A DNA stretch of 64,000 bases from Saccostrea cucullata (taxonomy: Eukaryota), in the NCBI RefSeq assembly GCF_032062105.1, contig NW_026939914.1, forward strand, positions 1 through 64,000. Reading direction: 5' to 3'. A program made the translations under genes and the position numbers. Of the stretch, positions 24,284 to 24,962 are shown in pieces (within the stretch, counting starts at the first letter, position 1; every line of letters starts with the position of its first letter). The notes under the pieces were generated by a model, which saw only the letters and a program-made list of their open reading frames with translations, had not been told where the DNA came from and searched no databases.

Positions 24284-24962
24284 GCAAACAGCCTGGACAT
24301 ACCCCTGGCGACAAATCATGCCCCCACTATGAACCTCAAAAGCACGTTACACCTTTTTGTGGAGCAGATGATGTCCTTTCAAATTTTTTTCCGTGCGAGT
24401 TGGATTTTTGTGGCGTCAAACATAAGTCTGCTGAACATGCTTTTCAATATACAAAAGCACTACGTTGTGGCGACTTGGACGCAGCAAACACCATTAAAGA
24501 CGCAGATGATGCCCTCTCTGCCTTGCGTCTTGGGAAAAAATTAAAACAAATGAACAATGGGAGTCGACAAAAAAAGAGGTCATGGAGGATATCCTTGAAA
24601 ACAAGTGTGTTCAAGTCCCAGTCTTCTTAGAAAAGCTGAGAACCGCTAAGCAGTCCACAACCTTTGTAGAGGCCACCTATAACAACGAGTGGGGATCGGG
24701 ACTGGATCGTACGGGAACACTAAATTCCAAACCGGAACACTGGCCGGGATCTAATACCCTCGGTGTCATGATGAAGAAAATCTCAAAAAAAATTCGAAAA
24801 AGGAAACTAAGCGACAGCATTAGTCGTAAACAAAAACAAGCACATCGTGAACAGTCTAGACAGCGAAATATCGTTCAGATGCTGAAGGATCTTAGAACTG
24901 CATCCGATAGTGACGTTTCTGGATGCAATGCCGATTCTGATAGCTCTGAAGGGGACAAATAA
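24284..24962 (+). pseudogene. LINE ORF1 C-terminus: zinc-knuckle remnant + NADAR (YbiA/DUF1768-like) domain + basic/acidic tail; one frameshift in the A-run at ~24535-24540
   Basis: Joined translation: KQPGHTPGDKSCPHYEPQKHVTPFCGADDVLSNFFPCELDFCGVKHKSAEHAFQYTKALRCGDLDAANTIKDADDALSALRLGKK/IKTNEQWESTKKEVMEDILENKCVQVPVFLEKLRTAKQSTTFVEATYNNEWGSG...WPGSNTLG. This matches the NADAR motifs LSNF, SxEHxFQxxKA, VEA..WGxG and GxNxLG. Confidence 0.8.

Follow-up and report, generated by a model that had tools for sequence, protein, structure and literature searches.

Introduction

The nearest described counterparts of the element considered here are long interspersed nuclear elements (LINEs) of the Tx1 type in the Pacific oyster: the proteins encoded by the first open reading frame (ORF1) of several Crassostrea gigas Tx1 families in Repbase appear to carry a NADAR domain of the YbiA family, with an unclear role that is perhaps RNA processing, and a NADAR domain has also been noted in one Gypsy lineage of Ectocarpus (PMC12477816, Genome Biology 2025). 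Here we examine a stretch of 64,000 nucleotides from Saccostrea cucullata (contig NW_026939914.1, positions 1 to 64,000, hereafter the window), in which positions 24284-24962 encode a NADAR domain in the ORF1 of such a LINE. An initial sequence-only reading had attached this domain to the LINE and proposed that it may strip host ADP-ribose marks from the element's RNA or complementary DNA (cDNA). We find that NADAR is almost certainly an integral part of the ORF1 protein (ORF1p) throughout a large, old and recently active family, in which it is kept by purifying selection. The fusion is not new as a kind, given its earlier mention for the Pacific oyster, where both the type of element and the fusion are the same as here, and the present copy adds a member from a related species; that account consists of one paragraph and a supplementary alignment, without copy numbers, selection, structure, catalytic-site analysis or a link to a transferase (PMC12477816). 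In the literature that we searched, we did not find family-level evidence of selection, the architecture of tandem RNA recognition motifs (RRMs), the alternation of Glu and His described below, or the link to bivalve transferases of the CARP-1 type.

The Ectocarpus Gypsy element (PMC12477816) is likewise a retroelement with a YbiA-type NADAR in its own protein. However, it is a long terminal repeat (LTR) element of a brown alga, its domain stands at the N-terminus of Pol and not in an RNA-binding ORF1p, and the nearest relatives of that domain are bacterial, whereas the nearest relatives of the LINE domain outside LINEs are molluscan proteins with multiple NADAR domains.

The closest functional model for a counter-defence comes from T4-like and other phages, which carry orphan NADARs (AdfN) that clear DarT1 marks from phage DNA (PMC11825919). 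Both AdfN and the LINE domain are NADARs of a mobile element without a partner transferase, and 8 of the 74 LINE sequences that we compared even have the phage-type His on the last strand, although the window's subfamily has Glu. The two differ in that AdfN is a stand-alone phage protein whose shown target system is DarTG1, whilst the LINE domain is fused to an RNA-binding protein. With the NADAR of the DarT1-NADAR (DarTG1) systems (PMC11543638), the LINE domain has in common the hydrolase superfamily, the fold and the conserved Glu and Lys; yet its last-strand residue is Glu, as in YbiA, and not Asp, and it is not an operon partner; its neighbour is the LINE's second open reading frame (ORF2). 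DarT gave no profile match beside the NADAR reading frame or elsewhere in the genome, in a search of low power.

LINE ORF1 proteins are normally pure RNA binders. The Type I ORF1, which reportedly goes back to the classification of Khazina and Weichenrieder, is built of an RRM plus CCHC knuckles, a core that it has in common with the ORF1 described here, and the esterase-bearing ORF1 of CR1-like LINEs is a precedent for an enzyme domain in this position. To our knowledge, NADAR is absent from those described ORF1 types.

A truncated LINE copy with a split NADAR domain

Positions 24284-28806 of the window are a dead, 5'-truncated and frameshifted copy of a non-LTR retrotransposon of the L1/Tx1 type, whose complete form measures about 6.3 kb. 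Its parts are as follows.

24284..24540, + strand: ORF1 remnant, piece 1 (frame of 24286), with the second half of a CCHC-type knuckle and the N-terminal half of NADAR
24286-24321, + strand: half knuckle (CCHC-type, second half), from the translation
24433..24456, + strand: E-x6-K motif (Glu 24433-24435, Lys 24454-24456), equivalent to E43 and K50 of the Phytophthora NADAR, from the translation and the alignment to 8BAU
24535..24540, + strand: A-run at which the ORF1 frame breaks, from the comparison of frames and from RNA contigs
24540..24962, + strand: ORF1 remnant, piece 2 (frame of 24285), with the C-terminal half of NADAR, a basic tail, an acidic end rich in Ser and Asp, and the stop codon at 24960-24962
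24669..24701, + strand: last-strand Glu (24669-24671, the E125 equivalent, YbiA type), followed by Asn-Asn-Glu and Trp-Gly-Ser-Gly (NNEWGSG, 24681-24701; Trp 24690-24692)
24963..25073, + strand: spacer of 111 bp between ORF1 (stop 24960-24962) and ORF2 (ATG at 25074)
25074..28664, + strand: ORF2, in at least three frame pieces, with an apurinic/apyrimidinic endonuclease (APE) at about 25095-25778, reverse transcriptase at 26597-27274 and a zf-RVT zinc finger at 28212-28373
28665..28806, + strand: LINE 3' untranslated region and A-rich tail (tail 28769-28806); homology to about 30 other copies stops at 28780-28810

The two frame pieces of ORF1 were searched against Pfam separately and unjoined, and each matched the NADAR profile PF08719: piece 1 (window 24286-24537) covers profile positions 11-75 (E 7.8e-4, 20.2 bits), and piece 2 (window 24549-24959) covers positions 83-163 (E 2.2e-9, 38.2 bits, the curated cut-off being 35.1). 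As the matches are collinear, they represent a single NADAR domain split by the frameshift. In a three-frame translation of 24284-24964, the half knuckle of piece 1 is followed by LSNFF and SAEHAFQYTKA, and piece 2 reads NEQW, FVEATYNNEWGSG and WPGSN from about 24540 onwards, before a stretch rich in Lys and Arg and the Ser/Asp-rich end. The A-run at 24535-24540 is one A shorter than in the contigs of all four RNA libraries (4/4), which have an extra A after 24534, and in intact genomic copies the frame stays open through this stretch. The sequence-only reading, which had restored the NADAR motif set by correcting one frameshift in an A-run, had called the E-x6-K motif intact and had placed the domain about 110 bp upstream of ORF2, is borne out on all three points. 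It had also described a zinc knuckle, NADAR and a basic tail; NADAR and the tail are there, but of the knuckle this copy keeps only the second half, being truncated at 24284.

The truncation is sharp: homology to longer copies begins exactly at 24284, those copies reach about 920 bp further upstream, and RNA contigs that reach this point continue upstream with the ORF1 sequence of other copies. ORF2 matches, in order, Exo_endo_phos (E 5e-16), RVT_1 (E 6e-35) and zf-RVT (E 1e-7); it is broken at three or more places, and its length differs from that of other copies near 26263 (19 nt), 27832 (8 nt) and 28062 (1 nt). The hallmarks of an L1/Tx1-type insertion are present in the A-rich tail at 28769-28806, the truncation at 24284 and a target-site duplication of 9 bp. 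We use the Tx1 label on the basis of the domain architecture and of how Repbase classifies the C. gigas relatives, as cited in PMC12477816; homologues of the reverse transcriptase carried no informative names.

NADAR is a constant part of ORF1p across the family

A DNA search of the 1.17 Gb assembly with window positions 24320-25400 returned 7 further copies of 93-98% identity that span NADAR, spacer and the start of ORF2, together with a group of 70% identity whose matches take in ORF2 as well as the NADAR part. A protein search that started from the ORF1 of one copy (L002), which is nearly intact, yielded at least 121 ORF1 matches at 43-100% identity (580 candidates, 120 scored), many of which have uninterrupted open frames of 400-550 aa, and intact ORF1s of 392-481 aa were taken from 27 loci. 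NADAR scored 72-82 bits, against the cut-off of 35.1, in four intact ORF1s from different subfamilies. Of 20 diverged subfamilies, 19 have an APE-type ORF2 downstream of ORF1 in the same orientation, at a distance of 14-750 bp. The full element of about 6.3 kb is represented by copy L002 on contig C18344 (about 17446 to 23735). Because the junction between NADAR and LINE recurs across copies and subfamilies, the fusion is a stable feature of the family and no accident of this locus, and the assignment of the domain to the LINE's ORF1 in the first reading stands.

An alignment of the 27 intact ORF1s gives a common layout, with a conserved stretch of about 190 aa at the N-terminus, a pair of CCHC-type knuckles, NADAR, and a fast-evolving tail that is first basic and then acidic. 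Residues 1-238 of an intact copy, modelled with AlphaFold2 (pLDDT 87.8), match the tandem-RRM proteins hnRNP A2/B1, Pub1, UP1, U2AF65 and HuR (E 5e-5 to 1e-3), from which the predicted order in ORF1p is RRM-RRM-knuckle-knuckle-NADAR-tail. As modelled, ORF1p is thus a classical RRM-plus-knuckle ORF1 to which an enzyme domain has been added.

The two reading frames also differ in composition. In every subfamily examined (L033-L080), ORF1 has a GC content of 0.41-0.45 (0.37-0.48 at third codon positions, GC3) and ORF2 one of 0.27-0.30 (GC3 0.15-0.27); the corresponding values in the window copy are 0.44 in the NADAR part and 0.27 in ORF2. This split may reflect different translational control of the two frames, or a separate origin of the ORF1 module.

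RNA contigs from four libraries of one study, one of them 4.1 kb long, cover the element from ORF1 to its 3' tail, with DNA carry-over possible, and are suggestive only as to transcription of the element.

Predicted fold, catalytic positions and selection

We modelled the NADAR domain of an intact sister copy that has the NNEWGSG motif, rather than the window copy itself, and obtained an AlphaFold2 prediction with a pLDDT of 95.2. The model has the NADAR/YbiA fold, in which small sheets flank the core helices. Its only significant PDB matches are 8BAU, which is the NADAR of Phytophthora bound to ADP-ribose (E 2e-8, TM 0.80), and 2B3W, which is YbiA of E. coli (E 8e-7, TM 0.73); the next match has E >1.

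In solved and mutated NADARs, the key residues include a Glu and, seven residues on, a Lys (E43 and K50 of the Phytophthora NADAR), and the last-strand residue is Glu125 in YbiA-type NADARs, Asp in the BC4488/DarT1-linked ones and His in those of phages; Trp89, Trp133 and others bind the pyrophosphate, while Asp130, which lies three positions ahead of Trp133, reaches it solely via water and was not shown to be essential by mutagenesis (PMC11543638). We mapped these residues through HMMER alignments to 8BAU and YbiA and counted them over 74 family sequences. The equivalent of E43 is Glu in 73 of the 74, that of K50 is Lys in 71 and Arg in 3, and the last-strand position is Glu in 63, His in 8, Ala in 2 and Asp in 1; the Trp133 equivalent is Trp in every sequence (74/74), and the WPGxN motif is near-invariant. 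The window copy, dead as it is, retains the first Glu, the Lys, the last-strand Glu and the Trp (24433-24456, 24669-24671 and 24690-24692). Subfamilies of the His type are represented by L067:601-1776, L076:1252-2466, L079:598-1830 and L080:1228-2460, and intact copies of the Glu type include L035:1480-2799 and L045:1489-2826.

The first reading had further remarked that the Asp usually found three residues before WGxG appears as Asn in this copy. The Asn is indeed there, with a Glu directly after it, but it is not peculiar to the copy, as the whole of its subfamily and a sister subfamily have it in common; most other subfamilies have an Asp one or two residues ahead of the Trp. We regard the change as a minor concern, because the equivalent Asp130 makes only the water-mediated contact and is not among the residues found essential by mutagenesis (PMC11543638).

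Selection was gauged from pairwise Nei-Gojobori estimates of nonsynonymous (dN) and synonymous (dS) divergence. The ratio dN/dS for NADAR is 0.07-0.16 wherever dS is measurable (dS 0.08-0.41); between subfamilies dN is 0.13-0.30 and dS is saturated. The C-terminal tail of ORF1p evolves several times faster than NADAR. A missing profile match, or catalytic residues lost under neutral evolution, had been named beforehand as grounds for giving up the idea; what we find is a clear match to the NADAR profile, essential positions kept in 63-73 of the 74 sequences, and strong purifying selection. To judge from these alignments and models, the NADAR domain is a selected, and probably an active, part of the element.

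Distribution and plausible source of the domain

Species-named homologues that cover the entire ORF1 belong to Pinctada imbricata, Saccostrea cucullata, Crassostrea/Magallana gigas, Crassostrea virginica and Ostrea edulis, with identities of 42-65% for Crassostrea/Magallana gigas, Saccostrea cucullata, Pinctada imbricata and Ostrea edulis. A protein of assembly GCA_029979725.1 has the same RRM-knuckle-NADAR layout at 29% identity, with an APE reading frame behind it, and on this account the fusion is old.

An exhaustive profile search gathered 25,110 NADAR proteins at E <1e-3, 299 of them at E <1e-30. Among the best 145 representatives, 64 have the RRM-knuckle region; others are proteins with two to seven tandem NADAR domains, the top scorer among them being a protein of 4,240 aa from the abalone Haliotis rufescens. 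Outside LINEs, molluscan multi-NADAR genes of this kind are the closest relatives of the LINE domain, and they may plausibly have supplied it. A word-indexed search for a donor with the domain alone returned only oyster ORF1 fragments, and look-ups of the proteins from the profile search gave Haliotis rufescens multi-NADAR proteins as the only named clusters.

Several relatives deserve a remark of their own. Four representatives (P0150, P0153, P0158 and P0174) have three to seven tandem NADARs, the top one being Haliotis rufescens LOC124129589, of 4,240-4,851 aa. Two other close relatives (P0185 and P0231) join the domain to a GDSL-like lipase/esterase in one case and a TatD nuclease in the other, and the NADAR-esterase fusion recalls the esterase-type ORF1 of other LINEs. 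Finally, two Magallana gigas gene models (P0089 and P0090) are 70-75% identical to part of ORF1; one of them, annotated as interferon-induced helicase C domain-containing protein 1, includes CARD domains, and in the other NADAR stands together with a tyrosine-phosphatase domain. Both are likely to be annotation chimeras of host genes and LINE ORF1 fragments.

Candidate transferases in the same genome

ADP-ribosyltransferase (ART) genes had been proposed as something to look for in the same genome. The profile of the PF01129 ART family (R-S-E type) found three reading frames of 290-338 aa above its cut-off, at these places:

C12407:352540-353016: reading frame of the PF01129 ART family, profile match
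C12407:367574-368047: reading frame of the PF01129 ART family, profile match, 15 kb from the other one on C12407
C9166:165902-166441: reading frame of the PF01129 ART family, profile match

By contrast, the Scabin-like (pierisin family), DarT and Enterotoxin_a profiles had no match in the genome, although they were silent in the control genomes too, so that the search had low power.

The insertion locus

The copy in the window sits in another repeat and has probably itself received a further one.

24275..24283, no strand: 5' target-site duplication AAGGTACAG, read directly, immediately before the LINE
29353..29361, no strand: 3' target-site duplication AAGGTACAG, the 9-mer after the A-run of the second repeat
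about 28807..29352, + strand: a different repeat with its own A-run, inside the target-site duplication; copies on other contigs match from 28801 on at 91-94%
22840..24283 (or 22400..24283), resuming at 29362-30150, - strand: GC-rich, LINE-like element into which the LINE inserted (GC 0.49-0.52, weak RVT_1 match at E 6.5e-4)

In one RNA contig, derived from a paralogue of the GC-rich element that is uninterrupted, position 24252 is joined to 29356, which makes it equivalent to the empty site. The claim that the domain lies inside the element's target-site duplications was right, with AAGGTACAG on both sides and this contig in support, but an unrelated repeat is enclosed as well. A duplication directly behind the LINE's A-tail was looked for by a 13-mer search, with a negative result; the duplication sits beyond the nested second repeat. 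The nested repeat also occurs by itself, in copies of 91-94% identity on many other contigs that have no LINE next to them; it probably entered the LINE tail later, and may be a rider resembling a short interspersed nuclear element (SINE) that landed there.

Uninterrupted paralogues of the GC-rich element are present in contigs of the RNA libraries. Two further places in the assembly, C10892:298-5094 and C22440:10399-11201, hold 99%-identical versions of the insertion locus or of its 3' junction, with the nested repeat, and the 5' truncation point on C10892 is identical to that in the window; these are probably haplotigs or a recent (segmental) duplication.

Discussion

Why would a LINE keep an enzyme in its RNA coat protein? 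We propose that the NADAR domain tethered to ORF1p erases ADP-ribose from nucleic acid bases on behalf of the LINE, and we put this statement, anatomy and mechanism taken together, at roughly 55%, the mechanism being the part that we infer. ORF1p would coat the element's own RNA and accompany it to the integration site. There, the tethered NADAR would work as an N-glycosidic ADP-ribose hydrolase and strip ADP-ribose from guanine, perhaps also from cytosine, in the element's RNA, in nascent single-stranded cDNA or in nicked target DNA, where uncleared adducts would block reverse transcription or second-strand synthesis. Host R-S-E ADP-ribosyltransferases of the CARP-1 type, which are concentrated in bivalves, would be the leading candidates for the source of such marks.

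The chemistry of the family fits this proposal. All NADAR subfamilies tested so far remove ADP-ribose from the N2 of guanine in both DNA and RNA, including YbiA types, phage enzymes and a sponge NADAR; several also act on cytidine-ADP-ribose, and none acts on thymidine-linked or phosphate-linked ADP-ribose (PMC11543638, PMC11125620, PMC11833690, PMC12945103). The background that the sequence-only reading had invoked, on NADAR enzymes, on YbiA and on CARP-1, agrees with the literature, in which homologues of CARP-1, guanine-specific DNA transferases, are found mainly in Bivalvia (PMC12945103). The presence of three PF01129 reading frames in this genome also counts in its favour. By analogy with the phage enzymes, we infer that the LINE domain could serve as a counter-defence against host ADP-ribosylation. 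A wider scenario, in which oyster-group bivalves restrain retrotransposons by base-directed ADP-ribosylation, through CARP-1-like or other R-S-E transferases, and a lineage of Tx1-type LINEs has answered with a NADAR eraser in its RNA coat protein, is one that we advance tentatively and consider doubtful as it stands.

Several observations weigh against reading the domain as an eraser of base ADP-ribose. The loop that bears the adenine-stacking Tyr84 in the solved NADAR is shorter in the LINE NADAR, and the equivalents of R79 and D86 are variable among the 74 sequences, so that substrate binding may differ. The PF01129 ART family is best known for modifying proteins, and YbiA has a metabolic N-glycosidase activity too, so NADAR chemistry is not confined to ADP-ribosylated bases. 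Less weightily, the Scabin-like (pierisin family), DarT and Enterotoxin_a profiles found no match in the genome, in a search that used no CARP-1 query and in which the controls were silent; CARP-1 diverges more than any other protein of its family. DNA may also be present in the RNA libraries, whose contigs were compared without a silent control stretch. Hydrolase activity, substrate and ADP-ribose mark would all be carried over to the LINE NADARs by analogy with the family.

The strongest competitor accepts a catalytic NADAR and gives it a different substrate, one that is not a base ADP-ribosylated in defence: for example, an N-glycosidic group, NAD-derived or not, carried by the RNA of the element and removed in processing or maturation, or a small molecule, as for E. 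coli YbiA. That YbiA acts as a metabolite N-glycosidase is established, the adenine-binding loop of the LINE NADAR is unlike that of the solved enzyme, and the lack of a profile match to pierisin-type or DarT-type transferases, for all that the controls were silent, points the same way. RNA processing has moreover been suggested for the oyster and Ectocarpus NADAR retroelements, after an older prediction for RNA viruses (PMC12477816). Yet every NADAR subfamily that has been tested, YbiA types included, hydrolyses guanine-ADP-ribose on both DNA and RNA, and none the phosphate-linked form (PMC11125620, PMC11833690), and a metabolic role hardly fits a protein that coats transposon RNA. We therefore consider this account possible, if rather unlikely.

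Alternatively, NADAR could be catalytically dead, and serve ORF1p only as an extra module for nucleic acid binding or oligomerisation. ORF1 proteins are, after all, chiefly RNA binders and chaperones, before WGxG most NADARs carry Asp but the window's subfamily Asn, and the equivalents of R79, D86 and R93 vary. Against this, the three positions essential in mutagenesis are kept in 63-73 of the 74 sequences, His, the only common replacement, is the residue of active phage NADARs (PMC11125620), the Asp that varies makes a contact only through water in the solved complex (PMC11543638), and dN/dS is about 0.1 over the whole domain, all of which makes a dead NADAR quite improbable. That the NADAR stretch is a host exon or unrelated fragment beside a LINE copy, or a chance product of reading through a frameshift, as the jump in GC from 0.44 in the NADAR part to 0.27 in ORF2 and the abrupt start at 24284 might suggest, can be ruled out, since many copies have this junction, as do 19 of 20 diverged subfamilies, with the GC jump in all of them, the whole domain lies inside uninterrupted ORF1s of intact copies, and both pieces in the window match the profile separately.

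If LINE NADARs do erase base ADP-ribose in a conflict with the host, this would be the counterpart, in an animal transposon, of the conflict between phage AdfN and DarT1, and would constitute the first ADP-ribosylation-based immunity against transposons in animals; on that view, adaptation to the conflict would explain why subfamilies have switched between Glu and His at the catalytic last-strand position. An eraser enzyme in ORF1p under strong purifying selection across hundreds of copies would imply that ADP-ribosylated bases matter for retrotransposition here, and the domain has been retained while lineages drifted apart to identities of 29-45%. Which physiological role NADARs play in animals is regarded as an open question in research on ADP-ribosylation (PMC11125620), and bivalves are the very group in which eukaryotic guanine-specific DNA ADP-ribosyltransferases, the CARP-1 homologues, are concentrated. 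With its many natural, intact domains, this family of NADAR LINEs offers a route to ask whether base ADP-ribosylation acts as a genome defence in animals.

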